This document shows, piece by piece, positions 14,861 to 41,800 of a DNA stretch of 64,000 nt (positions are counted from its first letter, which is position 1; each line of letters starts with the position of its first letter). The stretch is from positions 26,040,001 to 26,104,000 of the forward strand of contig OZ038378.1 of the NCBI GenBank assembly GCA_964036045.1, in the 5' to 3' direction. Under the pieces are notes generated by a model. The model was not told the DNA's origin, did no database searches, and saw only the letters and a program-made list of their open reading frames with translations. The DNA is from Eutreptiella sp. 'Long Island Sound 2002'. Its lineage: Eukaryota > Protista > Euglenida. A program made the translations under genes and the position numbers.

Positions 14861-15603
14861 AATGTGTCGCTGCGCTATACAAAGGGAGCAAAGCAAGGAC
14901 CAAACACATGGCACAGCCTCTGAAAGGGACACACCAACGGCGAAACGCAACGTACTATCAACACCCTATTCAGCCTTGCGCGGAACAACATGGTGCCTAC
15001 TACCGTCGCTCTGCGGCGAATGCTTTCCTGGGTGCCTACTCCCATCGCTCTGCGGCGACTGCATTTGTTGTGGTTTAGGTTTCGGCACACACAGGTTTGG
15101 GTTTGGCACCATGCTGGCCTTTGACATATTTTGCAAGGGGAAACGCCCCATGAGCACTTGCCTAAAAAAACGCCGGGAAAAACGTCGCATGAGTCCCTAA
15201 CCCACGGGGTTGTGAAACAACAAACAAGTGGAACACCCACATTTCACATTGTGGGTGGCAGCATCCCGCGCCAGGGCCCCTTGTCCGCGGGCTGACGTTT
15301 GCAGTTAACATGTCTGGGTCAAACAACAAGTGGAACACCCCACATTTCACATTGTGGGTGGCAGCATCCCGTGCCAGGGGCCCCTTGTCCGCGGGCTGAC
15401 GTTTGCAGTTACATGTCTGGGCAAACAAACATGGAATAGTGTCAAGTGCCAGGGGCCCTTGTCGCGGGCTGACGTTTGCAGTTAACATGTCTGGGCAACA
15501 AACGACATTTGTATAGCGCCTCGTCTTGCGAAATCTGGCGCTCACACTAGAAAAGGGGGCGCCGTTGGTGCCACGCGGAAAAAAGGGGGGCGCCGTTGGC
15601 GCC

Positions 15604-15803
15604 NNNNNNNNNNNNNNNNNNNNNNNNNNNNNNNNNNNNNNNNNNNNNNNNNNNNNNNNNNNNNNNNNNNNNNNNNNNNNNNNNNNNNNNNNNNNNNNNN
15701 NNNNNNNNNNNNNNNNNNNNNNNNNNNNNNNNNNNNNNNNNNNNNNNNNNNNNNNNNNNNNNNNNNNNNNNNNNNNNNNNNNNNNNNNNNNNNNNNNNNN
15801 NNN
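15604..15803. other. 200-N assembly gap with flush duplicated flanks (14555-15603 = 15804-16888)
   Basis: Sequence after the gap restarts at CCACAAGCGG (14555). Sequence before the gap ends at GTTGGCGCC, matching 16888. Confidence 0.95.
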
Positions 15804-16475
15804 CCACAAGCGGTGGCCAAAGAAATGTCTTCTTGACCTTTAACATACTCCTTCCGCAGAAGGTGTTGACCCCACATGTGTGCGCATGCATATGCGAGGC
15901 ACTGTTGCCTCACAAATCTTGCACTGCAAGGAGCGGGAAAGGTCAGTGGTCAACCCTTTGTCACCACGATCTGTCGTAAACAAGCCTTCATACGGCTCAC
16001 ACTTCACGGGTGGCACCTTTTGAGGTGCCGTTTGGGCACACCATTCAGCAAGGGCATCCACCACGCAAGTCCCTCGCTTCAGCGACTTCTCAAGATCGAG
16101 TGTCGCCATAATGTGTCGCTGCGCTATACAAAGGGAGCAAAGCAAGGACCAAACACATGGCACAGCCTCTGAAAGGGACACACCAACGGCGAAACGCAAC
16201 GTACTATCAACACCCTATTCAGCCTTGCGCGGAACAACATGGTGCCTACTACCGTCGCTCTGCGGCGAATGCTTTCCTGGGTGCCTACTCCCATCGCTCT
16301 GCGGCGACTGCATTTGTTGTGGTTTAGGTTTCGGCACACACAGGTTTGGGTTTGGGCACCATGCTGGCCTTTGACATATTTTGCAAGGGGAAACGCCCCA
16401 TGGAGCACTTGCCTAAAAAAACGCGGAAAAACGTCGCATGAGTCCCTAACCCACGGGGTTGTGAAACAAACAAAC

Positions 16476-16790
16476 AAGTGGAACACCCCACATTTCACAT
16501 TGTGGGTGGCAGCATCCCGCGCCAGGGGCCCCTTGTCCGCGGGCTGACGTTTGCAGTTAACATGTCTGGGTCAAACAAACAAGTGGAACACCCCACATTT
16601 CACATTGTGGGTGGCAGCATCCCGCGCCAGGGGCCCCTTGTCCGCGGGCTGACGTTTGCAGTTAACATGTCTGGGTCAAACAAACAAGTGGAACACCCCA
16701 CATTTCACATTGTGGGTGGCAGCATCCCGTGCCAGGGGCCCCTTGTCCGCGGGCTGACGTTTGCAGTTAACATGTCTGGGCAACAAACGA
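16476..16790. repeat. 105-bp tandem repeat, 3 copies (degraded duplicate at 15227-15500)
   Basis: AAGTGGAACACCCCACATTTC starts at 16476, 16581 and 16686. Confidence 0.9.
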
Positions 16791-18855
16791 CATTTGTATA
16801 GCGCCTCGTCTTGCGAAATCTGGCGCTCACACTAGAAAAGGGGGCGCCGTTGGTGCCACGCGGAAAAAAGGGGGGCGCCGTTGGCGCCATGTCCCCAGCC
16901 CACTATCTCTCAAAACCCGGGGGGGGGGGGGGGGGGGGGGGGGGCTGGGGGGGGTCGCATACAAGGACCGGGCCCGGCCGCCCCCCCGTGGACGGCTGTT
17001 GGGAGAACCCCCCTCCCCGTTTCTGAAGGGGGGATTTCTATTCTCGAAGAGAAAAGTCCTCCGTTCAGGAACCGAGGAGGGGGTTTCTTTCAGAGCAATA
17101 TTTCCCCAATTGGGAACCAGACTCATCTTCTCTGGGGCCTAGAAAACATGCAAAAGATGAACAGCATGATATTGCGGAGAGCACTAATGAACACACTTAC
17201 GACATATTGTTGCCCTGTGGCCGAGAAGCTCTGCAAGGGAATGGCAAATTGGAAACCCTGAGTGTGGAACTCAGGGGATTAGGACGGGAGGGGGGGGGGC
17301 AAAGGCCACAGCGGAGGCAACTCCCAAATCGACTGTAACCCCGCTGGCCGTCATCGAAGAGGGCTAAACGAGCTGCAGCTACAGATCATTACTCATCAGC
17401 AAGCTAGCCGGATTTAGTTGCCAAGGTGATCCCCAGCCCTAATCAATGTTGCCCTGAAGATGCTGCCCCCCTCTCACCCAGAGACTTTTAGCTGAAAACA
17501 TCAGACACCTAATCGGATGATGTCAATCAGGGGACAAATGGTCTTGAGCCTCAAACAGACAGGGGCCACATGGTGCTTCTCATTACACCTGGCGCATGTG
17601 ATACTAGGTCCTTGACCCTGAAAAACTGCGCCTGTGTTTTACAACACAAAATTGCACACCTCACTAAACAACCAGGCAGGTAAGGTTGGTCTTATGGATT
17701 GGACCATAATCATTCCAAATCCCCCACATGTCATTGCCTGCCACACAACTCTTAGCGAACAAAAAATCGCGTCACGGTCACTGAATGTGCTTGACCAGCC
17801 GTCCCCAGATGTCTGCTCAAAGCGCATACCCTCTTTTCGTTTGCACAGTGTGGAATTCCTTGCACCTTCTTTACTCCATGCCTGTGACCCGTTTGCCCAG
17901 CAACCATTTGCACAGAAACCCCATACATTGTGAGCCCCCATGACCAGCATCCGTGACTGTCCCCTTATTTTCCAACAAAAATATTGCGGCCACAGGACAA
18001 CAACGCTTAGAATTGGTGCATCAAGTGTGCACCGATGCATTGATGGAGCTGTGGACCTAGGCATGTCATGCAGTTCAGTACCAGCATGTGTCCCGGAGTC
18101 CCACGACACCAAGCACAGGATGCAGGTGTGGCCCAAGCGTTGGGGTGGCCACAACATAATGTGTGCCTGCAGCAGTCGATGGCCCTGGGGTTGAGCAACC
18201 ATACACACTGATGGCCATGATGGTAGAAGCAGACGGTTAGGTGCACAGAAAGGAAGCAGGATGGTTTGGTGTGGTATCGACTTCAGGAGAAGGGTTTGGG
18301 ACACCCGTGGGAGGAGGACACTGCTTCTAAGCAAGGTCAGCAATAGCCACTGCATAGCAAATAGTGCAGACTACTTGGCACCATCAGGGGCGCAGCTGGA
18401 GCAACGCATCACGCTCTTCCCATGCTCGATGGGACGAGCACATGTTTCGCTGCCATCAGATGCGTCTGATGGGCCACGATTCGCACGTGAACAAAAGCAA
18501 CACAGGAATGACTCTGAACCAAACAGCTCCCAATCGGGGTCTTCGACAATCAGTTGTGTTTCTGACAAGAGCCTTCCAATGACACCCTTTGACGGACCCC
18601 TTCAACATATGGCTGTTCCCCCCCGTGTCCACTTGTCCTCACTGACATGGGGACAATGCAAACGCTCTTTGACAGGCAGTGTGGAACAGCCAGCTAAAGA
18701 CATACAGTGCTCGACAAACGGTCTTTGACGGTTCTGGAACACAGATACCGTGACAGACAGTCTTTGACAGATCATCGGTGACCACGGGGGGGCCGTCCCC
18801 TCGCTTTTAGACGCGACTCCCCCCCCCCCCAGTAGAAGTGGGCCGAAGGCCCCTA

Positions 18856-18892
<37 letters not shown>

Positions 18893-19070
18893 TTGGAGGG
18901 GGGGGGGTTCAGGGAGGGGCGATTGGGGGGGGGGGGCGGTCGGGAGGGTCAGTTGGGGGGGGGGGTCCAGGTGGGGCGATTTGGGGTGGTGGGGGGGGGG
19001 GCAGGCTCCCGTTACCTCCCCTTGCCCTCCCTCTGGGGTGAGAGCTTGGGCTAGGGTTAGGGCTAGGGTC

Positions 19071-22000
19071 ACCGAGCTGGTGGAACCAGTCTTGGTTTTA
19101 TAACCCTTTTCACCGAGCTGGTGGAACCAGTCTTGGTTTTATAACCCTTTTTAGTGTCTAGGGTGGACCTACCAGGTTTAGCAGCAGCAGCAGCAAGCAG
19201 CAGCAAGCAGCAGCAAGCAAGCAGCAGCACGCGCGAAATGGGGAAAAATCAGAACTCCGTCGTGGTGCTTCAGATTCAGCTGAAATTTTGGTGGATGATA
19301 CCTATGGGTGTGAAGTACAATCACACAAAGTTTGAGCAAGAAACTCAACGGTGGCGGCCGGGAACGGGATTCGCAAGTGGCGGACCTCAGTTTCAAAAAC
19401 TGCAGTTTAGGGCCAAAAACAGCCATTTTTGGGCCAAAAAAGCCCTGGAACACATTCAAAACGGCCAAATGAAGGGAAACGGTGGGTACACTGCACATGT
19501 GGCTTGACTTCCCCATGTCAACGAGCTCTTTGCGCCCCTCTGACTCCATGATATGTCCCGGAAACGGCCCAAAAAGGCCCCCAAAAGCTCCAAATGCCGA
19601 CAGCCACAAACCAAGAATAGGCCATATCTTTGGCTACATGGCTCAAAATGCGATTCCGAGGGCACCTACTCCACCCACAACCCCCCACTTTTTGTGGTTT
19701 CCACCCCTCAGAATTGCCTCAAAGGACGCCTAGACCCCAATACCTAGGCCCACTAGGCTGCGGCAAGCTGCAAGCTCAAGCCCAAACATGTGGGTGCCCA
19801 AATGGGTCAACAGGGTCCAGTAGGGGCAAAAAGATGACTTTTCTCAAAAATGATCCTAGACCATGTGCGACGCTAAAACAAGTGTTTTTGGACCGTTTTG
19901 AGCTTGTGGTGGCCCATTTTGGTCCTCCGAACATCCCAAAATGCCTTGAAAATGGGCTGTTTTGGGACCAAAAATGGGTCAAAAATGGGTCAAAAACACA
20001 TTTTTCCAAACCTCATCCTAGACCATATGGGGTGCACAAACGGGTGAAATGAGCCCATTTTGAGCCCATTTTGGGGCATTTTGGCCCCTTAGAAGTCCAA
20101 AAAGCCTTGAAAGTGGGCCTCGTGGTGATGGGGTTCACTTGCAAGCTGATTTCACTTTGTCAAGAGCCATCAATGTGTGAATCATTCTTGATGTCCCTCA
20201 CCAGTCATAGCTGATGTTCCCCTCCCCCACCAGCTCGGTCCCAATATTCAGTCTTGATTAGGGTCTAGGGTGGACCTACCAGGTTTAGCAGCAGCAGCAG
20301 CAAGCAGCAGCAAGCAGCAACAAGCAGCACGCGCGAAATGGGGAAAAATCAGACATCCGTCGTGGTGCTTCACATTCGGCTGAAATTTTGGTGGATGATA
20401 CCTATGGGTGTGAGGGACAACCACACAAAGTTTGAGCCAGAAACTCAACAGTGGCGGCCGGGAATGGGTGTCGCAAGTGGCGGACCTCAGTTTCAAAAAC
20501 AGCAGTTTAGGGCCAAAAACAGCCATTTTTGGGCCAAAAGAGCCCTAGAACCCATTCAAAACGGCCAAGGAAAGGGAAAGGGTGGGTACACTCCATGTGC
20601 GGCTTGACTTTCTTGTGTCAACGAGCTCTTTGCGGCCCTCTAACTCCATGATATGTCCCGGAAACGGCCCAAAAAGGCCCCCACAAGCCCCAAATTTTGT
20701 GCAGATTGGCTGGCGACAGCCACAAACCAAGAATAGGCCATATCTTTGGCTACATGGCTCAAAACGCGATTCCGAGGGCACCTACTCCACCCGCAACCCC
20801 CCTCGTTTTGTGGTTTCCACCCCTCAAAATTGCCCAAATGGACGCCTAGACCCCCGTACCCAAGCCCAGTAGGCTGCGGCAAGCTGCAAGCTCAAGCCCA
20901 AACAGGTGGGTGCCCAAATGGGTCAATAGGGTCCAATAGGGGCAAAAAGATGACTTTTCTCAAAAATGATCCTAGACCATGTGCGACGCTAAAACAAGTG
21001 TTTTTGGACTGTTTTGAGCTTGGGGTGGCCCATTTTGGTCCTCCGAAAATCCCAAAATGCCTTGAAGATGCGTTGTTTTGTGACCAAAAATGGGTCAAAA
21101 ATGGGTCAAAAATGCATTTTTCCAAAACTCATCCTAGACCATTTGGGGTGCACAAACGGGTAAAATGAGCCTATTTTGAGCCCATTTTGGGGCATTTTGG
21201 CCCCTCACAAGTCCACAAAAGCCTTGAAAGTGGGCCTTGTGGTGAAGGGGATCACTTGCAAGCTGATTCCACCCTGTCAACGGCCTTCAATGTGTAACTC
21301 ATTGGTATCCCTCACCATTCATATCTAATGTTCCCTCCCCCACCAGCTCGGTCCCAATATTCAGTCTTGATTAGGGTCACCGAGCTGGTGGAACCAGTCT
21401 TGGTTTTATAACCCTTTTTAGTGTCTAGGGTGGACCTACCAGGTTTAGCAGCAGCAGCAGCAAGCAGCAGCAAGCAGCAGCAAGCAGCAAGCAGCAGCAC
21501 GCGCGAAATGGGTAAAAATCAGAACTCCGTCGTGGGGCTTCATATTCGGGTGAAATTTTGGTGCATGATACCTATGGGTGTGAAGTACAATCACACAAAG
21601 TTTGAGCAAGAAACTCAACGGTGGTGGCAGGGAACGGGATTCGCAAGTGGCGGACCTCAGTTTCAAAAATGGCAGCTTAGGGCCAAAAACAGCCATTTTT
21701 GGGCCAAAAAAGCCCTGGAACACATTCAAAACAGCCAAACGAAGGGAAACGGTGGGTACACTTCACGTGCGGCTTGACTTCCCCGTGTCAACGAGCTCTT
21801 TGCGGCCCTCTAACTCCATGATATGTCCCGGAAACGGCCCAAAAAGGCCCCCAGAAACTTCAAATGCCGAGAGCCACAAACCAAGAATAGGCCATATCTT
21901 GGGCTACATGGCTCAAAATGCGATTCCGAGGGCACCTACTCCACCCGCAACCCCCCACTTTTTGTGGTTTCCAGCCCTCAGAATTGCCCAAACGGACGCC

Positions 22001-23670
22001 TAGACCCCAATACCTAGGCCCACTAGGCTGCGGCAAGCTGCAAGCTCAAGCCCAAACAGGTGGGTGCCCAAATGGGTCAACAGGGTCCAGTAGGGGCAAA
22101 AAGATGACTTTTCTCAAAAATGATCCTAGACCATGTGCGACGCTAAAACAAGTGTTTTTGGACCGTTTTGAGCTTGTGGTGGCCCATTTTGGTCCTCCGA
22201 AAATTCCAAAATGCCTTGAAAATGGGTTGTTTTGGGACCAAAAATGGGTCAAAAATGCATTTTTCCAAACCTCATCCTAGACCATTTGGGGTGCACAAAC
22301 GGGTGAAATGAGCCCATTTTGAGCCCATTTTGGGGCATTTTGGCCCCTTAGAAGTCCAAAAAGCCTTGAAAGTGGGCCTTGTGGTGATGGGGTTCACTTG
22401 CAAGCTGATTCCACTTTGTCAAGAAGCATCAATGCGTGAATCATTCTTGATGTCCCTCACCAGTCATAGCTGATGTTCCCTCCCCCACCAGCTCGGTCCC
22501 AATATTCAGTCTTGATTAGGGTTAGGGTCACCGAGCTGGTGGAACCAGTCTTGGTTTTATAACCCTTTTTAGTGTCTAGGGTGGACCTACCAGGTTTAGC
22601 AAGCAAGCAGCAAGCAAGCAGCAAGCAGCAAGCAAGCAGCACGCGCGAAATGGGTAAAAATCAGAACTCCGTCGTGGTGCTTCGGATTCGGGTGAAATTT
22701 TGGTGCATGATACCTATGGGTGTGAAGTACAATCACACAAAGTTTGAGCAAGAAACTCAACGGTGGCGGCCGGGAACGGGATTCGCAAGTGGCGGACCTC
22801 AGTTTCAAAAACTGCAGTTTAGGGCCAAAAACAGCCATTTTTGGGCTTAAAAAGCCCTGGAACACATTCAAAACGGCCAAATGAAGGGAAACGGTGGGTA
22901 CACTCCACGTGCGGCTTGACTTCCCCATGTCAACGAGCTCTTTGCGCCCCTCTGACTCCATGATATGTCCCGGAAACGGCCCAAAAAGGCCCCCAGAAGC
23001 TCCAAATGCCGACAGCCACAAACCAAGAATAGGCCATATCTTTGGCTACATGGCTCAAAATGCGATTCCGAGGGCACCTACTCCACCCACAACCCCCCAC
23101 TTTTTGTGGTTTCCAGCCCTCAGAGTTGCCCAAACGGACGCCTAGACCCCAATACCTAGGCCCACTAGGCTGCGGCAAGCTGCAAGCTCAAGCCCAAACA
23201 GGTGGGTGCCCAAATGGGTCAACAGGGTCCAGTAGGGGCAAAAAGATGACTTTTCTCAAAAATGATCCTCGACCATGTGCGACGCTAAAACAAGTGTTTT
23301 TGGACCGTTTTGAGCTTGTGGTGGCCCATTTTGGTCCTCCGAACATCCCAAAATGCCTTGAAAATGGGCTGTTTTGGGACCAAAAATGGGTTAAAAATGG
23401 GTCAAAAATGCATTTTTCCAAACCTCATCCTAGACCATTTGGGGTGCACAAACGGGTGAAATGAGCCCATTTTGAGCCCATTTTGGGGTATTTTGGCCCC
23501 TCAGAAGTCCAAAAAGCCTTGAAAGTGGGCCTTGTGGTGATGGGGTTCACTTGCAAGCCGATTCCACTTTGTCAAGAGCCATCAATGTGTGAATCATTCT
23601 TGATGTCCCTCACCAGTCATAGCTGATGTTCCCTCCCCCACCAGCTCGGTCCCAATATTCAGTCTTGATT
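19071..23670 (+). repeat. Tandem array A: four ~1.1-kb units
   Basis: Heads ACCGAGCTGGTGG at 19071/19112 (41-bp head duplication), 21379 and 22530; unit 2 is headless from ~20260. Tails CCACCAGCTCGGT+CCCAATATTCAGTCTTGATT end at 20259, 21372, 22517 and 23670. Confidence 0.95.
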
Positions 23671-23776
23671 AGGGTTAGGGTTAGGGTCATGGGTAGGGTT
23701 AGGTGTAGGGTTAGGAGCAGGCTGAGGGTTGGGGTGGGCGTTAGAGTCAAGGTTGGGTTCAAGTATAGCGTTGGGG
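23669..23776 (+). repeat. Interstitial telomere-like hexamer tract (3 perfect TTAGGG decaying into variants)
   Basis: TTAGGG x3, then TCATGG GTAGGG TTAGGT GTAGGG TTAGGA.. in 6-nt phase. Confidence 0.9.
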
Positions 23777-25860
23777 TGCTCCACCGCCTGGGCGGGGAGG
23801 GATGCTACGTGGGCAAGGGGAATGAAAAAATTTTTCGGGCGCCTTCGGCGCCACCATATGTATGGCCAGTAGCTATTCATCCTTGGTAACTAAGTGGGCC
23901 CGGAGGGGGGGGGGGGGGGGAGTCGCGTACCGGGACCGAGGAGACGGCCCCCCCGTGTCGGTGACATATGGTCCTTGACGCTTAGACTTGGACGGGCGAA
24001 ATTTTACACACATTTGACAAACAACTTTTGGTAGTCCACCTTTGAAATACAATCTTTCACGGACATTCGTTGAGAGACAGGGTTTGACAGGCGATCATTG
24101 ACAGCCTTTGAGACACAGTCATTGACAGGCAAACTTTGATAGAAAACGTGTGGTAGAGAAATAGCGCTTCTCTGACACACAGTGATTGCCATATACAACC
24201 TACCTGGAAAAAAGCGACAGCCTCAGGCCTACACTCTGTTGGGAGAAAATAGCACCGGTCCTCAAACTCCATTGCTCTAGATGATAGCAGATGATACTTG
24301 CTCTCGGACCCTGCACTGCTAAAACAACAGACAACAGTGGCAGCAAGACCACACTGTGGGCCAACAACAATACAAGACATCTTTGACGGATAGTCTTTGA
24401 CAAAACAGTAAATGACGTACAGTCTTGGACAGACGGTGTTTGATCGGTGGTCTTGCATGGGCAGTCCTGAACAGGCTGCCCATGACAGACAATCCTTTAC
24501 ATGCAGCCCTTGACAAATGGGCTGCGACAGGCTCTCCTTGACACACCGCCTGTGCCAAGCTATTTTTGATGCAAAGTGGGCATAGGTCATCGGCCAGGTT
24601 GACATGACCGTGTGCATATGGCATGGAGCACGTGGTGCAGACATTGGGAACAAACAGTACCCAGGGCTTCGGCGTTTGTCATCCTCTCTGGAAGCCCGGG
24701 TGGCGCTTTCACAGGCGAGGGGTGTACCACGGGCAGAACCTGACCAGGGGGAGGGGCACGCAAATAAGGAGGACTGGCCGAGTGGCGGTGACAGTGAATC
24801 CCATTCCAACACGCACATAAACAGGAAATCACAGCCAGCCATGAGCCATCAGCCGATGGAACATGTAAATGGTTCCCACGTCCATGCAAGATCCCTGCCC
24901 ATGGCACCCATGGTGACAGCCCATGTCGCCTGCCAGGTCCACTTGGATTAAAAATGACTAAGATCAATACTTATTGGCCAGGGATCGCGACGCTATCCGT
25001 TTCAATGAAAACCCTGACATTTCATGAAACGCCTTGGGAGGGAGGGGGGGGCATGTCTGCAGGGAAGCGCTGTGCATTGTGGAGGATAGCGTGGATAATA
25101 AAGCTGTCCTTCTTTGGGGGGGGGGGGTCCCATCTCCAAATCTGGGCAACATCTTGGGGACGTTTTGCAAGCCTACGCACCTTATTTCTTGATATAAGTT
25201 GCAGGAGCATGCCACAGGATGGAGTCACATGCGCAGGTGTTGCTTCGCTTCATGCTTCGCTTTGCTTCGTCTTCCAATGATTTCTTCACTGTGTACAGGT
25301 ATGTCGTCTCCCTTGTGACATGGCTGTTTGTGACTGTTTGTGTCACGTCTCACCATGTGTGACCATGGCCCAGGACCACGGATCCTGCCCTCATCACTTA
25401 AAGCGAGACCGCCCCTGACAGCCCATCCCTGAACAAGCCAGGAGGAGCAGGAACCCCCCCCCTCGCCCCCCATTCTAGGCGGGCACATACACAGGGATGG
25501 AGGCGGGAAGCGTTTCAACACTGCTACCCCCAAACTTCGATATGGCAGACAGGAGTACCCTCAGCCACCGGGGACGCCGCCCAGGCGCACTGCAGAGCCC
25601 CCTGCAAGCGCCTCAAGAGGTCACCACAATTGCGGCCTCGGGCACCATATCTTGGGGTACGTTGCGGGGGCGCTGCATGCTACAGCATCACGAGCTGCCT
25701 GGGGCGTCTGCACGTTGCAGGCGCGCCGCCGAATGCACCTGGGGGGGGGTGGGATTGTTGCCCCCACCACCAAGCCGCACGTGCTGCATGGCACACTGCA
25801 CTGCAGAGCTACTCGGGGGTGCACCAACATCCCCCCACCCGAGCCGCTCTATTGGGGCAC

Positions 25861-25991
25861 TCAGAGCCATTTGATCCGCCGGAACATCCACACGATGAAG
25901 CAGTTGATGCCCGCGATGACCCCCCAGAACGCCCAGTAGCCGTACTTCCACTCGAGCCAGGGCATGTGCGTGAAGTTCATGCCAAACAGGC
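25861..25991 (-). CDS. corA: CorA exon 7 (GMN motif, TM2, stop)
   Basis: TTTGTAG| GLFGMNFTHMPWLEWKYGYWAFWGVIAGINCFIVWMFRRIKWL*. Confidence 0.95.
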
Positions 25992-28900
25992 CTACAAAGG
26001 GGCAGGACATGAGTGTGAGTCGCAAACTTCATCACATGCGTTGCCTCAGAGGGTCCCGCCGCAGCAGTGCCTACTGATCAGGAGAGGAAAGTGGGAGCTG
26101 GCAAATGCTCCGCCGCTGATGTTGACTGGCTCAGTGCTGTGACGTCCCATGCACCAACGGCGTGGGGGAAATTCAGTTTTTTTGGGGGGGGGGGCGGGCA
26201 TTCAAGTTTACATTCCGAACCCCCCCCCCCTCAAAGGGGCTCCCACGACTGAGGCCCTTACCGACCCAGCGACAGGGTCCATCAGGGGGTTCAGGGGGGG
26301 GGGGGGGAGGAGGAGGACCCATGGGCCTCACACCCAACCAGGCTTGAGGTGCATGTCTCAACAGACCTGGACTTCAGCCACTCCTCTCGTCTCCACCTCA
26401 GACGATACTTGTCTGGAATCTGGGGTACATCCCCCCTGTAGGGCATTTCGTAAAACCTAGTATGCGCTGTAGTAAAACCTAGTAAAATGTAGTAAAACCT
26501 AGTAAAATGTAGTAAAACCTAGTTAAAAAATTTTTTTTGAAAAAAAAATTTCAAACAGTTTTTTTCTTTACTAGGTAAAAAAACAAAATTTTGAAAAAAA
26601 AATTTTCCTTACTAAGTCAATTCCCGGCCACTGTTGCCAGTGGCGCCCCACCCAGGCCGAACCATGCATCTTGTGAAGAAGGACTTCATGTATGTTTCGA
26701 AACCCTTTGGAGGAGAGGGGGGGGGTTTGCAAAGGGGGACAAAATCAGAATTGGCTGCCTAACCCCTGCGTTCTGGAGGGCCCACAAGTGGGCGGAAATG
26801 CTACGTCACCCCTTCATTCTCGATGATCCCCAACAAAAGGGACAAAATCAAAGCACAAAAAAAACAAAAAAAACAAAAACGAAAATTTTCCCATGATGTC
26901 TATGACTCAGCCTAGGGCTTTGCAGATTACACCCAATGGGGTCTGAACCCATGACCTTCCACTTGTAAAGGCACTGATTTACCCACTGGGGTATGAGAAA
27001 TTTGGAGGAATTGGATTTTCCCCCATTTCTCCCCATTTCTCCCCATTGTTCCCCATTTTCCCCCATTTTTCCTCCCCTTGTGGTGCCGTTGGCCACCCCC
27101 CCAACCCCAACCTGTCAGACAAAAATGGTTTTTTGGGGGGTTTTCACACCATGTTTCCCCCATTTACCCACATAAATCACAAAAAATCTCACCCCAACGC
27201 CCATTTCCCCCCATTTTCCCCCATTTTCCCGCATGTTTCCCCATTTTTCCTCGGGAGCTTTCGCCAATGCACCCCCCCCCCCCCCACAGCCTTGTTGCCA
27301 ACCGAACCCTTGATTTTTGGCCTTTTCAGCCCCAAAATTTCCCATTTTTCCACCAAACAATCTAAATTCCCCTCGTTTATCCCCATTTCCCCCCATTTTT
27401 CCTACTTTGGCCCATTTCCCAGATAGTGTTCCGCTAAATGTACCCAAAGTGGGTACTTCTAAGCTCTGCCATGGTGAGTCCGCCGTAAAAAGCTAGGGAC
27501 AAGGGTCTTGAAGCCTGGTAAGGGGGTGTGTTGAATTGATATGCGATGGAATGTCTGTTGTTTGTACCCCTATTGGATGTGAGCTGTCCAATTTTGGGAG
27601 GTTTGATTTAAAACGTGTCCCGGTGTCCAAGGCTTTGGCACCCGCAGACACAAAGAACCCCACCCCCACTGCCCATGCAAGATAGTACCATTAGACTTAA
27701 CCATCCCATTTTACCCTTAATTGACCTTTGTTTGTTCTCAAGAATAGATCGGAAATTGCTATCTCAAACCTAGGCTATTTCACCTGCCTCCCCCTCTTTT
27801 CATTATGGCATTGGCAGCTGTCCTGGACGCACTATCCACAATGTCTGGGACCACGTCTAAAAAAACGCCTCAGTAGTGAGAACATAGGTGCCGCGGGTTT
27901 TCAAATGAAGTAAGTAACCAACGCTTGGCAACACCCAAAGGATGTCCCCCACCAACCTGTGTTTCTCATACGCCGGTCGGTGCTCCACCAAAGCTTCAAT
28001 ATAAGATTTCAAGTTTGTGAAAGTAGGATTGTGTCATGGCACAAAACTGCACCAAAACTTGTCAGTGCTCCACCAAAGCTTCAATATAAGATTTCAAGCT
28101 TGTGAAAGTAGGATTGTGTCACGGCAGAAAACTGCACCAAAACTTGTCAACACATGTCCCCAAGCGTTGTTGGACCATGAGGAGGACCAAGCCGTGTACG
28201 ATTCCACGACAAAAGAGTGGTCTAACGCAATAGGAATATACACGGGATAAATCCTGTAAGATCCGGTATCCCGGCACACAATAGCAAAAGCCCCGGCACA
28301 ACAATGGTTTGGGATCCATGAAGCATGAGTGGTGACAAATGTCGCGTTGTCTAACACATGCTAAACATTATGAATGACTAGCTGCGGGCATTGTTGGAGC
28401 CCATCGCAGGCAAGAAGAGACCGGCCAAACCGAAGAATGCAATGGCCCACCAGCTTGAGCGGCTTGCTAAAGGGTGTAATATCTCCGGTCCATCAAAGGA
28501 TGCACCTGTTGCGCTTGCTAGTCATGGCGTGCTCTAGCCATGACATGGGGTCGCACCATCGCTAGGTCCACGTCCAGGAGGTAAACTGTGACCCCTAAGA
28601 AGTGTAAATAGGCTAGAGACATATCATGACCGGTGTTGTGGCAACAACATAAGAACTTCAGCACTTGTTGGTAGCAAGGCATGTGGGGACCCACGCGCCA
28701 GTGCACAGTAAAAAGGCCATGCAACGTCGAAGCACTCACCGCAGCACTCACCGCAGGGTTGCCATGTTGCAGCTGGCGTGAATAGGTGGGTGTGAAAGAA
28801 CTCGGAAATGCTAGAAACCACTGCAGGGGTGAACCTTGCCAAAACAGCATCTATTGGCTGCATGAAGAGGGCGGAGACAAAATTATGCCACCAGGTAACC

Positions 28901-31900: not shown

Positions 31901-34900
31901 CAAGGGGAGCAGGAAAGGGGGTGTGTGAACAGGTTGCGATCAGGGTAAGAGAGTTGTTTGCAGTATGGGCAAGGGGGGCGAGAAGATCCAGAGCAGGTAG
32001 GCGGGGGATAGGATGCCCTTTGCAGGGAATTTGCTGGGACCACTGAAGCGGTGCTAGACCGGTGCTCTCCAACTGGTTTGTGTACCATGGCTCGCCTATG
32101 AAGACCATGCAAATGGGCCATGGAGGGTGCAAAAACGGACCCCATCACAAAGTAGGCACAATCTGTGCGCCAACGGGCAGCGGCAAAACAACGGCTGTGG
32201 TTTGGTACAGCCAGGATTTTTTTTCAAAAAACGCCAAACACTCACTTAACGCCAGGACGGAAACGATAGAACATAAAACAAAAGGCTGGAAAAAAAGGTG
32301 AGGACCCTGCCGTCCAGAAAAAATATGGGGGGGCAAGACTATTGGCAGATGGGACACGGTACACACAGTGCGTTGCCTCCGACATGGGAGGCGAATTTTT
32401 CGTAGCTAGTTGGGGCAATTGACCCCCCCCCACCCCTCCCTTTTCCCTAATTTTTACCCCAATTTTTTCCATTTTTGAAAATCATGCAGAAGAGGCCATA
32501 GAATCTTGTAGCCGTTTGCTACAGGGTCCAAGCAATTTCTGCATCAAAAATTCCTTCCTTTCATTTTTCAAGACACAGTCTTTGATATATCATTGTGTAC
32601 ATGTACTTCAATGTGCCACCAGTCAAATATTTGTCAAAAACGATTTTTTCACCATTTTTAATCGCAAAAGAAGGGGTCCTGAATGCTGCTAGTTGGATCA
32701 AAAAGCTACAAAAGAGGGCCACAAACTCCAACAAGAAAAACCCCAATGCTTTGTCCCAACTGGGCTATATACACCTGCAGCGACGCCACGTAATCAAGAA
32801 TAGTCAAAATGTGATCACGCAAATCATTGTAGTGCCACTGCAGCTCCGTCATATTCCGTTGCCTTGCGTGCTCTGTGAGTGAGGCTACAGTGGATGCCAG
32901 CGGCCGCAGTACAAACAAAAGGTTGTTCATCTCTTGCAAAGTAGTTTGAATGACACGGAAAATGGTAGCGTACTGTTGTTGCGCAATGTTGGGACCGCCG
33001 GTCTTCGGCCGCTCGGTGCAGAGCAGATCACGCACCTTGTCCAGCTGCATTCTGAGAGAGGAGAGAAGCGATGCATATGTGTATGCTGCAGTCATGATCT
33101 GCGATCATACAAAAAACACACAGACACGCAGAATGCACTGCTCCAGTGCATGCTTCCACTAATTTGCACAAAGTACATTCATGGACTGGTTTGAGGATAA
33201 ATTGCAATTTGGAATCATTTGCCATTTCTCCGGTCCTGCAGGGATTTCATATTGCTGTGGGCAGAAGGAGTTGGGGGGTTCAGATTGATTCCCTACTGAT
33301 TGCCTCCTTCGATTGCGTTTTGGTATTCTGTTATTCAGTCCAGCAGCATTTATGCTGCCCATTGCCACCGTGCGTCAGTCCGAATATGTTTTTCATCCAT
33401 TATTGAGTTCTCCAGAAAAATCCGAGTGTTTTGAGTATAGACACATGGGGTGAAAAACCATTTTTTCACCCTCTGCTGCATCAAGCAAATTTTCCTGATA
33501 GCTCCTTTGGCGCCGCCGGTCCGGCACTTCCCAGCCAATTTCCAAGAGGGAGGAAGGGGGGGGGGGGGGTGTCGGCGTAAAGGGTCCGGGCCCGGCGTCC
33601 CGGGCCTGGCCCACTCTCCACCTTCGTGCGGAGGGTGGTCAGGACAAACATTACGAAGATTGTTGCAAAATCTGTTTCTGTCTACAACTGTTTCAGTGGT
33701 AACAATGTCCAAAAAAAATTGAATTTTTTAGATTACATTCTACCTATGTACAATGTATGATCAGCTCAGGCATGACACCGTTCCATGGGCTGCATTCTAC
33801 TATACATTGGATTCACCCCCTTGAGTTGTGAGAAGATCGGGGCGTTGTTGAGGGCTGTGGTCGGTTACTGAAGGTTTTGAAGCCTTCTGGAGGGTCGTCA
33901 ACGGATGTTTAATGTTGTCTCAGGCTGTTCAGGGTTGCTAATGATTGTCGTAGGGTTTACCAGGCTTTTGCCCTGAAGCACCTTCAACAAGGCACCAGTG
34001 GCCGCTGCCCCCCCACGAGAGTATTCTGGTGCGGCAGTACTGACGGATAGTCCCTTGGGATCAAGCTGCAGCCAAAGCTTTGTGCCATTCTGATGAAATT
34101 GGGTTTGTGTGGGTGAAGATCAGTATTGTGAGTTTGGGTTATTGTGAAGGGAGACCAGGCACAGATTCAGGCCGCAGCTTCGAACCAGCCGTGGTGTTGT
34201 AGCTGCATTCCTTAAAACTTGACGGTGTTCCACCAGTGTTCCTCTCTGGCATTGTTGTTGAGGTTGTGAAGGGGCAAGGGCATTAAGGGTTGGCCAGGGT
34301 GGTCCATTGTTCAGCGTTGCTCAGCATGTGGAGTGATGAGGATCGTTGGAGGGTCGTTGAGGGGTGTGGAGTGTCTGTTAGATCTACACTTTCTGCGTCT
34401 CGCAGCAGCTACTGCAAGAATATGGCTTGCGCTGCGGCGTAAACGTGGCCCATTGCTGTGAGCCCCGGTAGGTCACCAGCTCACCAGCCTGCAACACCTT
34501 CCAGAGTACCCGACGTTTGTCAGCTTGTTCCCAAATCAGCCTCAGCCTTGGCTCTCAGTTTTGTCTCTCGTCGCCAACGCCATCAACAGCCGAGCAGTGT
34601 CACCGACCTCACCACGGCGGACAGATACACCGCAGCACACAACTCTTTTGCAGGTATTGAAAGAATCTGAAGCATGTTGGAAGGGTACACAGGATCAATG
34701 TTGCTGAGGTCCAAGGCTGTTCAGGGTTGCTAGTGATTGTTGAGGGGCTTGCCCTTGGCAACCGTTGAAAAGGCTTTTGCCCTCAAGCACCTTCAACAAT
34801 GCAACACTCTGTAACCCCTCGACAACCCTGTCCAAGGCGGGAGAAAGAACACCATGACGTCCCTGACACAAAGGCCGAACCATAAACCCAAGTCAAGGGG

Positions 34901-35850
34901 ACCCAGAACCACAACCATAACCGTGAGCCTGGACATACTACCTGAACCGGTTCATCATGGGGTATAAGCGATCGACCTCCTTGTCGATGATCATGTGCAA
35001 CAGCCAGTGTGCATCCGTAGTGCGAAGTTTGGTTCCTGGGGTGGCAATATTGGACTTGCAGATTTCCACAGTCTTGGAGGGGCTGTTGAAGAAACTCAGC
35101 AGCGTGTTGTCCTGACAGGGCAAGCGAAAAAGGGTGGGGCACCAAACCTACGGAGCCTGAACCCGGGACGTAATGACTGGAGATGAACACAAATTGCAGC
35201 CTTGGCCCAGAGGCATCTAGAGGCCATTTTTTTTGAAGAAATGGATGGCATACAGCTCCCTTGTGGCAGAGTCGACGCACACAGGGCCACAACAGACCAG
35301 CCGAGTGCAGATAGAAGACGATTGGAAGGGATCACGGGGGGGATGTCTCCTCGCTTTTATACGCGACCCCCCCCCCAGTAGAAGTGGGCCGAAGGCCCCC
35401 AAGAGGGGGGGGGGGGGGGGGTTCAGGGAGGGGCGACGGGGGGGGGGGGGCGGTTGGGAGGGTCGGTTGGGGGGGGGGGTCCAGGTGGGGCGATTTGGGG
35501 TGGTGAGGGGGGGGCGGGGGGGGGGGGGGGCAGGCTCCCCTTACCTCCCCTTGCCCTCAATCTAACCATACCATCACCATAAACCTAACCCTAACCTTTG
35601 CAGCCAGTTGGTTTGGCCATGCCAGCCATGTCAATTGGGCTGCACAAGATCCCCGAAATTTCGTTCATGGCTGCTTTTGCCACATCATTGCTCTCCATTG
35701 TGGACCCCAACACTCATTCTAACCCGAGCCTAGGGTGAGAGCTAGAGCTAGGGGCAGGGCTAGGGTTAGGGTCACCGAGCTGGTGGAACCAGTCTTGGTT
35801 TTATAACCCTTTTTAGTGTCTAGGGTGGACCTACCAGGTTTAGCAGCAGC

Positions 35851-35881
<31 letters not shown>

Positions 35882-38800
35882 CGCGCGAAATGGGCAGAAA
35901 TCAGAACTCCGTCGTGGTGCTTTGGATTTGGGTGAAATTTTGGTGCATGATACCTATGGGTGTGAAGTACAATCACACAAAGTTTCAGCGAGAAACTCAA
36001 CGGTGGCGGCCGGGAACGGGATTCGCAAGTGGCGGACCTCAATTTCAAAAACTGCAGTTTAGGGCCAAAAACAGCCATTTTTGGGCCAAAAAGACCCTAG
36101 AACACATTCAAAACGGCCAAACGAAGGGAAACAGTGGGTACACTCCACGTGCGGCTTGACTTCCCCATGTCAACGAGCTCTTTGCGCCCCTCTGACTCCA
36201 TGATATGTCCCGGAAACGGCCCAAAAAGGCCCCCAAAAGCTCCAAATGCCGACAGCCACAAACCAAGAATAGGCCATATCTTTGGCTACATGGCTCAAAA
36301 TGCGATTCCGAGGGCACCTACTCCACCCGCAACCCCCCACTTTTTGTGGTTTCCAGCCCTCAGAATTGCCCAAATGGACGCCTAGACCCCAATACCTAGG
36401 CCCACTAGGCTGCGGCAAGCTGCAAGCTCAAGCCCAAACAGGTGGGTGCCCAAATGGGTCAACAGGGTCCAGTAGGGGCAAAAAGATGACTTTTCTCAAA
36501 AATGATCCTAGACCATGTGCGACGCTAAAACAAGTGTTTTTGGACCGTTTTGAGCTTGTGGTGGCCCATTTTGGTCCTCCGAAAATCCTCAAATGCCTTG
36601 AAAATGGGCTGTTTTGGGACCAAAAATGGGTCAAAAATGCATTTTTCCAAACCTCATCCTAGACCATTTGGGGTGCACAAACGGGTAAAATGAGCCCATT
36701 TTGAGCCCATTTTGGGGCATTTTGGCCCCTCAGAAGTCCAAAAAGCCTTGAAAGTGGGCCTCGTGGTGATGGGGTTCACTTGCAAGCTGATTCCACTTTG
36801 TCAAGAGCCATCAATGTGTGAATCATTCTTGATGTCCCTCACCAGTCATAGTTGATGTTCCCTCCCCCACCAGCTCGGTCCCAATATTAAGTCTTGATTA
36901 GGGCAAGGGTTAGGGTTAGGGTCACCGAGCTGGTGGAACCAGTCTTGGTTTTGTAACCCTTTTTAGTGTCTAGGGTGGACCTACTAGGTTTACCAGCAGC
37001 AAGCAGCAAGCAGCAGCACGCGCGAAATGGGTAAAAATCATAACTCCGTCGTGGTGCTTCGGATTCGGGTGAAATTTTGGTGGATGATACCTATGGGTGT
37101 GAAGTACAATCACACAAAGTTTCAGCAAGAAACTCAACGGTGGCGGCCGGGAACGGGATTCGCAAGTGGCGGACCTCAATTTCAAAAACTGCAGTTCAGG
37201 GCCAAAAACAGCCATTTTTGGGCCAAAAAGACCCTAGAACACATTCAAAACGGCCAAACGAAGGGAAACAGTGGGTACACTCCACGTGTGGCTTGACTTC
37301 CCCGTGTCAACGAGCTCTTTGCGGCCCTCTAACTCCATGATATGTCCCGGAAACGGCCCAAAAAGGCCCCCAGAAGCTCCAAATGCCGACAGCCACAAAC
37401 CAAGAATAGGCCATATCTTTGGCTACATGGCTCAAAATGCGATTCCGAGGGCACCTACTCCACCCGCAACCCCCCACTTTTTGTGGTTTCCAGCCCTCAG
37501 AGTTGCCCAAACGGACGCCTAGACCCCAATACCTAGGCCCACTAGGCTGCGGCAAGCTGCAAGCTCAAGCCCAAACAGGTGGGTGCCCAAATGGGTCAAC
37601 AGGGTCCAGTAGGGGCAAAAAGATGACTTTTCTCAAAAATGATCCTAGACCATGTGCGACGCTAAAACAAGTGTTTTTGGAGCTTGTGGTGGCCCATTTT
37701 GGTCCTCCGAAAATCCTCAAATGCCTTGAAAATGGGCTGTTTTGGGACCAAAAATGGGTCAAAAATGCATTTTTCCAAACCTCATCCTAGACCATTTGGG
37801 GTGCACAAACGGGTAAAATGAGCCCATTTTGAGCCCATTTTGGGGCATTTTGGCCCCTCAGAAGTCCAAAAAGCCTTGAAAGTGGGCCTCGTGGTGATGG
37901 GGTTCACTTGCAAGCTGATTCCACTTTGTCAAGAGCCATCAATGTGTGAATCATTCTTGATGTCCCTCACCAGTCATAGTTGATGTTCCCTCCCCCACCA
38001 GCTCGGTCCCAATATTAAGTCTTGATTAGGGCAAGGGTTAGGGTTAGGGTCACCGAGCTGGTGGAACCAGTCTTGGTTTTATAACCCTTTTTAGTGTCTA
38101 GGGTGGACCTACTAGGTTTACCAGCAGCAAGCAGCAAGCAGCAGCACGCGCGAAATGGGCAGAAATCATAACTCCGTCGTGGGGCTTCAGATTCGGGTGA
38201 AATTTTGGTGGATGATACCTATGGGTGTGAAGTACAATCACACAAAGTTTCAGCGAGAAACTCAACGGTGGCGGCCGGGAACGGGATTCGCAAGTGGCGG
38301 ACCTCAATTTCAAAAACTGCAGTTCAGGGCCAAAAACAGCCATTTTTGGGCCAAAAAAGCCCTAGAACACATTCAAAACGGCCAAACGAAGGGAAACAGT
38401 GGGTACACTCCACGTGCGGCTTGACTTCCCCGTGTCAACGAGCTCTTTGCGGCCCTCTAACTCCATGATATGTCCCGGAAACGGCCCAAAAAGGCCCCCA
38501 GAAGCTCCAAATGCCGACAGCCACAAACCAAGAATAGGCCATATCTTTGGCTACATGGCTCAAAATGCGATTCCGAGGGCACCTACTCCACCCGCAACCC
38601 CCCACTTTTTGTGGTTTCCAGCCCTCAGAATTGCCCAAATGGACGCCTAGACCCCAATACCTAGGCCCACTAGGCTGCGGCAAGCTGCAAGCTCAAGCCC
38701 AAACAGGTGGGTGCCCAAATGGGTCAACAGGGTCCAGTAGGGGCAAAAAGATGACTCTTCTCAAAAATGATCCTAGACCATGTGCGACGCTAAAACAAGT

Positions 38801-41800
38801 GTTTTTGGAGCTTGTGGTGGCCCATTTTGGTCCTCCGAAAATCCTCAAATGCCTTGAAAATGGGCTGTTTTAGGACCAAAAAAGGGTCAAAAATGCATTT
38901 TTCCAAACCTCATCCTAGACCATTTGGGGTGCACAAACGGGTGAAATGAGCCCATTTTGAGCCCATTTTGGGGCATTTTGGCCCCTCAGAAGTCCAAAAA
39001 GCCTTGAAAGTGGGCCTTGTGGTGATGGGGTTCACTTGCAAGCTGATTCCACTTTGTCAAGAGCCAACAATGTGTGAATCATTCTTGATGTCATAGCTCA
39101 TGTTCCCTCCGCCACCAGCTCGGTCCCAATATTCAGTCTTGATTAGGGCAAGGGTTAGGGTTAGGGTCACCGAGCTGGTGGAACCAGTCTTGGTTTTATA
39201 ACCCTTTTTAGTGTCTAGGGTGGACCTACTAGGTTTACCAGCAGCAAGCAGCAAGCAGCAGCACGCGCGAAATGGGTAAAAATCATAACTCCGTCGTGGG
39301 GCTTCAGATTCGGGTGAAATTTTGGTGGATGATACCTATGGGTGTGAAGTACAATCACACAAAGTTTCAGCGAGAAACTCAACGGTGGCGGCCGGGAACG
39401 GGATTCGCAAGTGGCGGACCTCAATTTCAAAAACTGCAGTTCAGGGCCAAAAACAGCCATTTTTGGGCCAAAAAAGCCCGGGAACACATTCAAAACGGCC
39501 AAACGAAGGGAAACGGTGGGTACACTCCACGTGTGGCTTGACTTCCCCGTGTCAACGAGCTCTTTGCGGCCCTCTAACTCCATGATATGTCCCGGAAACG
39601 GCCCAAAAAGGCCCCCAAAAGCTCCAAATGCCGACAGCCACAAACCAAGAATAGGCCATATCTTTGGCTACATGGCTCAAAATGCGATTCCGAGGGCACC
39701 TACTCCACCCGCAACCCCCCACTTTTTGTGGTTTCCACCCCTCAGAATTGCCCAAATGGACGCCTAGACCCCAATACCTAGGCCCACTAGGCTGCGGCAA
39801 GCTGCAAGCTCAAGCCCAAACAGGTGGGTGCCCAAATGGGTCAACAGGGTCCAGTAGGGGCAAAAAAATTAATTTTCTCAAAAATGATCCTCGACCATGT
39901 GCGACGCTAAAACAAGTGTTTTTGGACCGTTTTGAGCTTGTGGTGGCCCATTTTGGTCCTCCGAAAATCCCAAAATGCCTTGAAAATGGGCTGTTTTGGG
40001 ACCAAAAATGGGTTAAAAATGGGTCAAAAATGCATTTTTCCAAACCTCATCCTAGACCATTTGGGGTGCACAAACGGGTAAAATGAGCCCATTTTGAGCC
40101 CATTTTGGGGCATTTTGGCCCCTCAGAAGTCCAAAAAGCCTTGAAAGTGGGCCTCGTGGTGATGGGGTTCACTTGCAAGCTGATTCCACTTTGTCAAGAG
40201 CCATCAATGCGTGAATCATTCTTGATGTCCCTCACCAGTCATAGTTGATGTTCCCTCCCCCACCAGCTCGGTCCCAATATTAAGTCTTGATTAGGGCAAG
40301 GGTTAGGGTTAGGGTCACCGAGCTGGTGGAACCAGTCTTGGTTTTATAACCCTTTTTAGTGTCTAGGGTGGACCTACCAGGTTTAGCAGCAGCAGCAGCA
40401 AGCAGCAAGCAAGCAGCACGCGCGAAATGGGTAAAAATCATAACTCCGTCGTGGGGCTTCAGATTCGGGTGAAATTTTGGTGGATGATACCTATGGGTGT
40501 GAAGTACAATCACACAAAGTTTCAGCGAGAAACTCAACGGTGGCGGCCGGGAACGGGATTCGCAAGTGGCGGACCTCAATTTCAAAAACTGCAGTTCAGG
40601 GCCAAAAACAGCCATTTTTGGGCCAAAAAGACCCTAGAACACATTCAAAACGGCCAAACGAAGGGAAACAGTGGGTACACTCCACGTGTGGCTTGACTTC
40701 CCCGTGTCAACGAGCTCTTTGCGGCCCTCTAACTCCATGATATGTCCCGGAAACGGCCCAAAAAGGCCCCCAGAAGCTCCAAATGCCGACAGCCACAAAC
40801 CAAGAATAGGCCATATCTTTGGCTACATGGCTCAAAATGCGATTCCGAGGGCACCTACTCCACCCGCAACCCCCCACTTTTTGTGGTTTCCAGCCCTCAG
40901 AGTTGCCCAAACGGACGCCTAGACCCCAATACCTAGGCCCACTAGGCTGCGGCAAGCTGCAAGCTCAAGCCCAAACAGGTGGGTGCCCAAATGGGTCAAC
41001 AGGGTCCAGTAGGGGCAAAAAGATGACTCTTCTCAAAAATGATCCTAGACCATGTTTGGCGCTAAAACAAGTGTTTTTGGACCGTTTTGAGCTTGTGGTG
41101 GCCCATTTTGGTCCTCCGAAAATCCCAAAATGCCTTGAAAATGGGCTGTTTTGGGACCAAAAATGGGTTAAAAATGGGTCAAAAATGCATTTTTCCAAAC
41201 CTCATCCTAGACCATTTGGGGTGCACAAACGGGTAAAATGAGCCCATTTTGAGCCCATTTTGGGGCATTTTGGCCCCTCAGAAGTCCAAAAAGCCTTGAA
41301 AGTGGGCCTCGTGGTGATGGGGTTCACTTGCAAGCTGATTCCACTTTGTCAAGAGCCATCAATGTGTGAATCATTCTTGATGTCCCTCACCAGTCATAGT
41401 TGATGTTCTCTCCCCCACCAGCTCGGTCCCAATATTCAGTCTTGGTTAGGGTTAGGGTCAAGGGAAAGGTTTGGGGGTAGGGTTAGGAGTAGGCTGAGGG
41501 TTGGGGTGGGCATTAGAGTCAAGGTTGGGTTCAAGGATAATGTTGGGGTGCAAAGTGGACAAAATGGGCAAGGGGAATGAAAAAAAAAATTTCGGGCGCC
41601 TTCGGCGCCACCATATGTATGGCCAGTAGCTGTTGACCCTTGGCAACTAAGTGGGCCCGGAGGGCAGGGAGGGGGGGGGAGGGGGGGGGGGGGGAGTCGC
41701 GTACCAGAACCGAGGAGACGTCCCCCCGTGGAAGGGATCGTGGACGAGTGCAGAGGGCAGTCTGTAAGCTGTAGGCTGTTGAGGGCAATGGCCGTAGAGG

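Follow-up and report, generated by a model that had tools for sequence, protein, structure and literature searches.

Telomere-repeat-phased tandem units nested within terminal inverted repeat transposons of the euglenid Eutreptiella sp. 'Long Island Sound 2002'

Introduction

Several described systems come close to the locus that we report here. HINEs, which belong with DINE-1 Helentrons and Helitron2, are defined by 12-15-bp subterminal inverted repeats that lie 2-4 nt from the 5' end, a short DINE-1-type inverted repeat whose 5' half falls inside the 5' repeat, microsatellite or tandem repeats, a 3' palindrome, and insertion at TT without target duplication (PMC4067079). Non-autonomous Helentron elements of Crassostrea gigas carry satellite-like arrays (PMC7492417), and the telomere-capping Helitrons of Paramecium aurelia, described in 2026, have telomeric repeats on both sides and lie on one strand, for which strand-specific insertion was proposed (PMC13085455). 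We analyzed a 64,000-nt window of the Eutreptiella sp. 'Long Island Sound 2002' genome (assembly GCA_964036045.1, contig OZ038378.1, positions 26,040,001 to 26,104,000), in which two terminal inverted repeat (TIR) transposons, E1 and E2, carry tandem arrays of a 1.1-kb repeat (the unit) joined by TTAGGG hexamers. E1, E2, and a third member of the family, M3, are referred to as vehicles, and all coordinates are positions in the window. The initial annotation, made from the sequence alone, had proposed a new kind of system. Nesting of one transposable element within another, arrays borne by transposable elements (PMC7492417), and Helitrons that target telomere repeats (PMC13085455) have all been described, and we conclude that at this locus one mobile element is nested in another, in an unusual form of known kinds, and that no new class is involved. 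In the literature that we searched, we found no description of either family, vehicle or unit, from euglenids.

Results

Two array-bearing elements with homologous arms

Vehicle ends and block borders were read from the sequence at both sides and then checked by script. E1 spans 18783-23957 (5175 bp) and has the 8-bp target-site duplication (TSD) TCGGTGAC at either side, at 18775-18782 and 23958-23965; E2 spans 35333-41730 (6398 bp) between two copies of GAAGGGAT at 35325-35332 and 41731-41738. The E1 left arm (18783-19068, plus strand) opens with the TIR CACGGGGGGGCCGTCCCCTCG, a GCGAC motif, and a C-run, and further holds a GGGCC-GAA-GGCCC hairpin, G-rich repeats of ~30 nt, and a short degenerate TTAGGG-like tract. 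Its right arm (23669-23957, plus strand) begins with three perfect and then degenerate TTAGGG repeats, and continues through a unique segment containing a GGCGCC-TTC-GGCGCC hairpin, a G-run, and a GTCGC motif to the right TIR, which ends in CCCCCCCGTG. Both E2 arms, the left at 35333-35771 and the right with its TIR at 41446-41730 (plus strand), are homologous to those of E1. The terminal pattern CACGGGGGGNNNGTCNCCTCG was matched five times in the window at up to three mismatches, against 0.16 matches expected; four of these matches are the four E1 and E2 ends, and the fifth, at 48165 with three mismatches, is no element end. The left arms, the degenerate TTAGGG tracts, and the right arms of E1 and E2 are 85-93% identical in aligned columns, with 451 identities in 510 columns (88%) when six segments are summed. 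The perfect TSDs and the alignable ends and arms thus uphold the earlier description of two insertions with 8-bp TSDs, homologous arms, and this internal layout.

The two left arms differ by an extra ~168 bp in E2 (35558-35725) that E1 does not have, with a CCCTAA-like tract on its left and a TTAGGG-like tract on its right. Since loose contig ends from run X5 at 19034/19036 carry the same E2-type piece, its absence from E1 is probably due to a deletion; alternatively, the piece could be a further small insertion into the telomere-like tract.

A direct-repeat search of the window returned nine copies of the unit in two blocks, with a start-to-start spacing of 1100-1170 bp, unit lengths of 1093-1189 bp, and pairwise identities of 92-98.6%. 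The E1 array (19069-23668, plus strand) consists of four units, at 19069-20257, 20264-21370, 21377-22515, and 22528-23668, separated by one, one, and two TTAGGG hexamers (6, 6, and 12 nt). The E2 array (35772-41445, plus strand) consists of five units, at 35772-36897, 36922-38025, 38050-39142, 39167-40290, and 40315-41445, and all four of its junctions have the same 24-nt spacer, TTAGGGCAAGGGTTAGGGTTAGGG, which includes the variant hexamer CAAGGG. At each junction the unit end ...AGTCTTGA is followed by whole hexamers and then by the next unit start, TCACCGAG. In the assembled sequence, E1 and E2 do contain four and five units joined by telomeric hexamers, as originally read. The five E2 units are 97.2-98.6% identical to one another, with units 2-5 clustering together, and E1 units are 95.7-97.2% identical to E2 units. 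E1 unit 2 is missing 58 nt at its start, shares only 92% identity with the other units, and begins at an internal TCTAGGG that directly follows a target-like TTAGTG; in E1 unit 1 the first 41 nt, comprising the 5' end with its hairpin, are tandemly duplicated (19069-19151).

The unit has transposon-type ends shared with a 0.5-kb sister family

A full unit starts with TCACCGAGCTGGTGGAACCAGT and ends with CCACCAGCTCGGTCCCAATATT(C/A)AGTCTTGA. The 5' pattern ACCGAGCTGGTGGAACCAGT occurs in every unit except the 5'-truncated one, and the 3' pattern CCAGCTCGGTCC-N8-AGTCTTGA is common to all nine. A 13-bp sequence located 2 nt from the 5' end, ACCGAGCTGGTGG, is the reverse complement of CCACCAGCTCGGT, located 18 nt from the 3' end, and a 5' hairpin, CTGGT-GGA-ACCAG, overlaps the 5' copy of this inverted repeat. 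A variable-length (AGC/AAGC)n microsatellite lies ~110 nt into the unit. The longest open reading frame (ORF) in any unit is at most 123 aa; the unit ORFs had no Pfam match and the unit no Rfam match. Rfam searches of the whole window at the gathering threshold, and of the left part of E2 by E-value, found no ribozyme or RNA family, and the sole signals were weak miRNA-like matches on the G/C hairpin of the arm.

The same end code recurs in a sister family of ~0.5-kb units at 45824-46975, present in both orientations. Copy S1 (45824-46330, minus strand) directly adjoins S0 (46330 to ~46760, minus strand), and a third copy, S2 (46767 to ~46975, plus strand), comprises the 5' part only. The first ~100 nt and the last 28 nt of the sister are homologous to the 1.1-kb unit, and the body is different. 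Pairing within the ends is kept by compensating changes, both in the inverted repeat, which in the sister reads ACTGAGCTGGGTC / GACCCAGCTCAGT, and in the hairpin, which is CTGGG-TCT-CCCAG in the sister and CTGGT-GGA-ACCAG in the unit. S1 and S0 abut end to start with no spacer (...AAGTCTTGA|TTACTGAGC...), and scanning for CACG6-7 revealed no vehicle ends around the sister copies. The same ends on a different body, in both orientations and outside a vehicle, mark unit and sister as a putative family of non-autonomous mobile elements, probably served by one type of enzyme. We consider it very probable that the unit is mobile in its own right, by whatever mechanism. The earlier picture of an internally expanding satellite is therefore only partly retained: the E2 array did grow in place, as its four identical 24-nt spacers and the clustering of units 2-5 indicate, but a mere internal satellite does not account for transposon-type ends that covary in a sister family outside any vehicle.

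Unit borders are in a single telomere-repeat phase

Each of the nine units has ...AGGG before its 5' border and TTAGGG after its 3' border. The 18 unit borders are in one hexamer phase, the spacers are exact multiples of six, and the units lie in one orientation. The telomeric hexamers are best read as the insertion target of the unit. Borders written as ...GGGT|CACCGAG...TCTTGAT|TAGGG would correspond to insertion at T|T, the only TT of the hexamer, but are equally compatible with G|T. The sister flanks, where TTAGGC follows one 3' end and ...CCTGGT precedes one 5' end, are compatible with the same preference.

The unit has four of the HINE features: an asymmetric inverted repeat, a nested 5' hairpin, a microsatellite, and no target duplication. 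A fifth, the 3' palindrome (5-10 bp, located 8-35 nt from the 3' end), is represented in the main unit only by AATATT, without a stable fold (z-score +0.47), and the sister folds weakly there. Beyond the placement of the repeats, the nested hairpin, the microsatellite, and the lack of a TSD, the unit resembles HINE/DINE-1 Helentrons and Helitron2 in its T|T-compatible borders and head-to-tail arrays; it differs from HINEs in that its 3' tail is 18 nt long, versus 38-60 nt in mite HINEs, and shows no clear palindrome, and in that its target is a specific TTAGGG phase and not T-rich DNA (PMC4067079). In our judgment there is an even chance that the unit is a rolling-circle, HINE-like non-autonomous element of the Helitron2/Helentron type.

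Two other assignments of the unit were considered and rejected. A canonical Helitron (HLE1, with 5'-TC, 3'-CTRR, and an A/T target) does not fit, since the unit starts with TC but ends in TTGA and has flanks of G/T and T. A tyrosine-recombinase site does not fit either, since in the joined form the 13-bp repeats flank a spacer of ~26 nt, more than a crossover core would allow.

The vehicle is a TIR transposon with P-like ends

Scanning the window for CACG5+ and its complement identified a third vehicle, M3, at 13489-16990 (plus strand), flanked by the TSD GACGGCTG at 13481-13488 and 16991-16998. Its ends have the layout of E1 and E2, namely CACG6-7, ~22 nt, (A/T)(C/T)GCGAC, and then a C-run, and the six termini of the three elements align over CACG6-7, ~22 nt, GCGAC, and the C-run. 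M3 contains no 1.1-kb units; its cargo comprises minus-strand Cys/His-rich ORFs and 105-bp tandem repeats (15223-15428 and 16467-16788). The cargo ORFs had no Pfam match, and atlas searches gave weak C2H2-like leads only. Because near-identical sequence flanks an assembly N gap within M3 (15604-15803), part of the element has probably been duplicated by the assembly. The initial annotation had called for further TSD-flanked copies of the TIR family, and in M3 one turned up within the window, with other cargo. E1, E2, and M3 lie within 28 kb (13489-41730), all in the same orientation, which suggests local hopping or a neighborhood rich in transposable elements.

To place the insertions in other material, public short-read contigs were aligned to 18400-24300. 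In run X1, which had the best coverage, one contig spans the junction of the E1 right TIR and its flank, so the insertion is present in X1. In run X8, an estuary metatranscriptome, a 476-nt contig (record 25) joins 18482-18774 to 23958-24140 without a mismatch, and is the exact empty site of E1 with a single TCGGTGAC. An empty site in other material had been proposed as a check on the insertion, and this contig supplies it. The contig would come from a strain that does not have E1, a strain difference that we infer from an RNA library. X8 comprises 382 Mb and contains the E1 flank at four-fold depth; since contaminating DNA is an improbable source of a single-copy flank at such depth, we conclude that the E1 flanks are transcribed.

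The TSDs are perfect in all three copies, and each site is different (TCGGTGAC, GAAGGGAT, and GACGGCTG). From the three perfect TSDs and the E1 empty site we conclude that the outer element is a genuine TIR transposon. It encodes nothing recognizable and no transposase was found in the window; lacking recognizable coding content, the vehicle is non-autonomous. The cut-and-paste, non-autonomous vehicle proposed at the outset is thus borne out by perfect TSDs in three of three copies and by the exact E1 empty site in an independent sample.

Elements of the P superfamily have 7-8-bp TSDs and 5'-CANRG termini, with a transposase in autonomous copies that combines THAP and an RNase H-like catalytic domain, and those of the hAT superfamily have 8-bp TSDs and 5'-YARNG termini. 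The vehicle termini, CACGG with an 8-bp TSD, fit the P type; the TSD also fits hAT, but the third terminal base is C where YARNG has a purine. The initial annotation had named hAT and P as superfamilies for which an 8-bp TSD and CA-starting TIRs are typical. With non-autonomous P and hAT elements the vehicle further has in common that its TIRs are short, that its internal cargo varies, and that several copies lie within 28 kb. We know of no description of a GCGAC motif and long C/G runs beside the TIR as a feature of P or hAT. Merlin elements have 8-9-bp TSDs and a conserved terminal 5'-GG, and occur in Euglena gracilis with 8-bp TSDs (PMC8101967); Merlin was rejected because the vehicle termini are CA and not GG. 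The ends and the TSD fit P better than hAT or Merlin, and on the basis of these termini the vehicle may be classed as a P-like MITE (miniature inverted-repeat transposable element).

The TIRs of E1, E2, and M3 also have CGG at positions 3-5, with CCG mirrored at the other end (e.g., 18783-18787 / 23953-23957). The experimentally derived code of euglenid nonconventional introns is N3-CDG...CH'G-N5-6, followed by a purine (PMC12501133). CGG and CCG of the TIR, taken with one flanking nt on the 5' side and three to four on the 3' side, fit this Euglena code, and for N5 the next nucleotide is a purine in all three elements. A genic copy of the vehicle might be spliced, leaving a scar of 3-4 nt.

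Vehicle and unit families are abundant

Summed word depth in X1 was ~30 for the flanks, 4e4-1.7e5 for the arms, and 0.4-1.4e6 for the units (depth here does not equal copy number), and with arm and unit depths so far above that of the flanks, the two families are evidently present in great abundance. In many contigs the unit 3' end is followed by TTAGGG repeats and then by heterogeneous sequence that does not resemble the vehicle arm, and at junctions elsewhere in the genome, internally broken units are joined via TTAGGGTT. RNA libraries contain the unit in quantity, among them X19, a probable RNA run with another organism label, which has a 925-nt unit contig.

A metagenome contig (Ga0180434_10377456, 1-1101) is ~90% identical to the unit and has a head-to-tail junction via three degenerate hexamers, TTATGGTTAGGGTTGGGG, in the same phase as the units in the window. 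On the strength of this junction we conclude that the unit family and its arrays exist in an independent sample. This was the one 1.1-kb contig recovered by a metagenome scan with the unit 5' end, and it contains the tandem junction only; a scan with the unit 3' end gave no matches, nor did scans of viral contigs with the unit 3' end and with the TIR. Around the elements, homologue searches with the ORFs at 24057-24842 and 1081-2148 (both minus strand) found none, and Pfam searches of flanking ORFs gave no match.

Discussion

We read the locus as a two-level nest, in which a non-autonomous TIR vehicle holds a HINE-like unit phased to telomere repeats; taken as a whole, with both levels named in this way, the interpretation could about equally well turn out right or wrong. 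The rolling-circle enzyme would be supplied to the unit in trans. Each insertion would preserve TTAGGG on either side, such that later insertions on the same strand could land next to it and build up a head-to-tail array. The closest parallel in target, the Paramecium Helitrons, also lie in a single orientation within telomeric repeats and have ORF-less, repeat-rich derivatives; they differ in that the flanking strand is C-rich and the insertions are at chromosome ends, whereas the strand that flanks the units described here is G-rich, and these units occupy interstitial positions within a second transposon and form short regular arrays (PMC13085455). As in C. gigas, short tandem arrays in gene-rich DNA would owe their spread to a non-autonomous mobile element, but there a Helentron carries the satellite, whereas here the shell is a TIR element and the Helentron-like unit is itself repeated (PMC7492417). 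A fuller version of the scenario, in which the unit is a parasitic Helentron at very high copy that targets TTAGGG on the G strand, seeds interstitial telomeric repeats, and also rides a P-like MITE that offers a landing pad, is tentative, and we would lean against it in its entirety.

The two arrays have grown in different ways. Identical spacers with CAAGGG and the clustering of units 2-5 show that unit-plus-spacer blocks in E2 were duplicated in place, for which unequal exchange and read-through or multimer transposition are candidate mechanisms. The E1 array, with its heterogeneous spacers and its diverged, truncated unit 2, looks like the product of separate neighboring insertions.

Not all observations favor a nest of this kind, and several weigh against it. 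One T at the unit borders is ambiguous, and insertion at G|T fits them equally well; the main-family 3' tail shows no convincing hairpin; no Rep-helicase partner with the unit ends was found in the window; and the ratios of unit to arm depth do not settle whether most units sit outside vehicles. In addition, the arms of E1 and E2 are two to three times more diverged than their units (~9-13% vs ~3-4%), with 15 differences per 183 nt in the cleanest arm segments, where the rate seen in units predicts ~6. This last gap bears on whether the vehicle would transpose with the array on board. The E1 and E2 arrays begin and end at an equivalent place in the arms, and their leftmost units have three private variants in common, both of which argue for co-transposition, and we judge it somewhat probable. 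The gap in divergence fits independent colonization or gene conversion at least as well. If the vehicle had moved unit-free and the unit had later entered the TTAGGG tracts of the resident copies separately, the vehicle would be a landing pad and not a carrier, and arms would be expected to differ more than units, as they do. Units also cluster mostly by element, E1 and E2 do not share a hexamer context at the left border, and the E1 junctions are heterogeneous, with one unit truncated and 92% identical. The equivalent array positions and the shared private variants count against such colonization, and the greater arm divergence may just reflect more mutation and misalignment in G-rich sequence; on balance we regard it as a serious possibility that falls a little short of an even chance.

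Other explanations concern the nature of the unit itself. It could derive from a retroelement specific to telomere repeats, inserted by target-primed reverse transcription in the manner of SART/TRAS or endonuclease-less Penelope-like elements. SART/TRAS and TAS/TATE-type elements are similar in their fixed-phase insertion into hexamers and in arrays spaced by telomeric repeats, and such an origin would agree with the 5'-truncated copy with TTAGGG before it, the varying number of hexamers after the unit 3' end, the abundance of the unit in RNA libraries (including the X19 contig), and the truncated units joined via TTAGGGTT at other genomic junctions. However, RNA signal is expected anyway from so abundant a repeat in transcribed regions. 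The unit differs from SART/TRAS and TAS/TATE-type elements in its DNA-transposon-like ends and in having no recombinase remnant, and neither poly(A), a reverse-transcriptase remnant, a hammerhead, nor another Rfam motif was found in it; the covarying asymmetric repeat, the 5' hairpin, and the direct abutment of sister copies are typical of HUH/rolling-circle elements. We therefore consider a retroelement origin unlikely. The unit might instead be an immobile macrosatellite internal to the TIR element, expanding by unequal crossing-over with the hexamers as part of the repeat, which would explain the copy numbers of four and five and the identical E2 spacers. Such a macrosatellite should not have a sister family with covarying ends, another body, and both orientations outside the vehicle, nor E1 spacers of varying length, nor contigs that run from the unit 3' end and TTAGGG into heterogeneous sequence unlike the arm, and this explanation is likewise improbable.

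The X8 empty site could in principle reflect removal of the whole of E1 from RNA as a nonconventional intron. The four-fold depth of a single-copy sequence in a 382-Mb metatranscriptome is hard to obtain from DNA, and an origin from MITEs has been proposed for the nonconventional introns of euglenids, whose borders often have TSD-like repeats (PMC12501133, PMC11282704). However, exact removal of the element together with one TSD needs CDG at TIR positions 1-3, where the TIR has CAC; use of CGG/CCG at positions 3-5 would leave 3-4 extra nt, of which the X8 contig has none; and the E1 site lies in no long reading frame. We consider such RNA removal very unlikely and take the X8 contig as an empty site.

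The nesting indicates that the internal sequence of one transposon can serve as a safe landing site for another. Both families appear very abundant and need entries in repeat libraries, without which annotation would take them for satellites or telomere relics. If the unit truly targets TTAGGG, it could readily supply interstitial telomeric repeats, and tandem arrays at the kilobase scale, to the gene regions of a euglenid genome. Targeting of telomere repeats by Helitron-like elements would then have arisen outside the chromosome ends of Paramecium and with the opposite strand preference, making this the second lineage after Paramecium with telomere-repeat-targeted Helitrons, and the first at interstitial sites.

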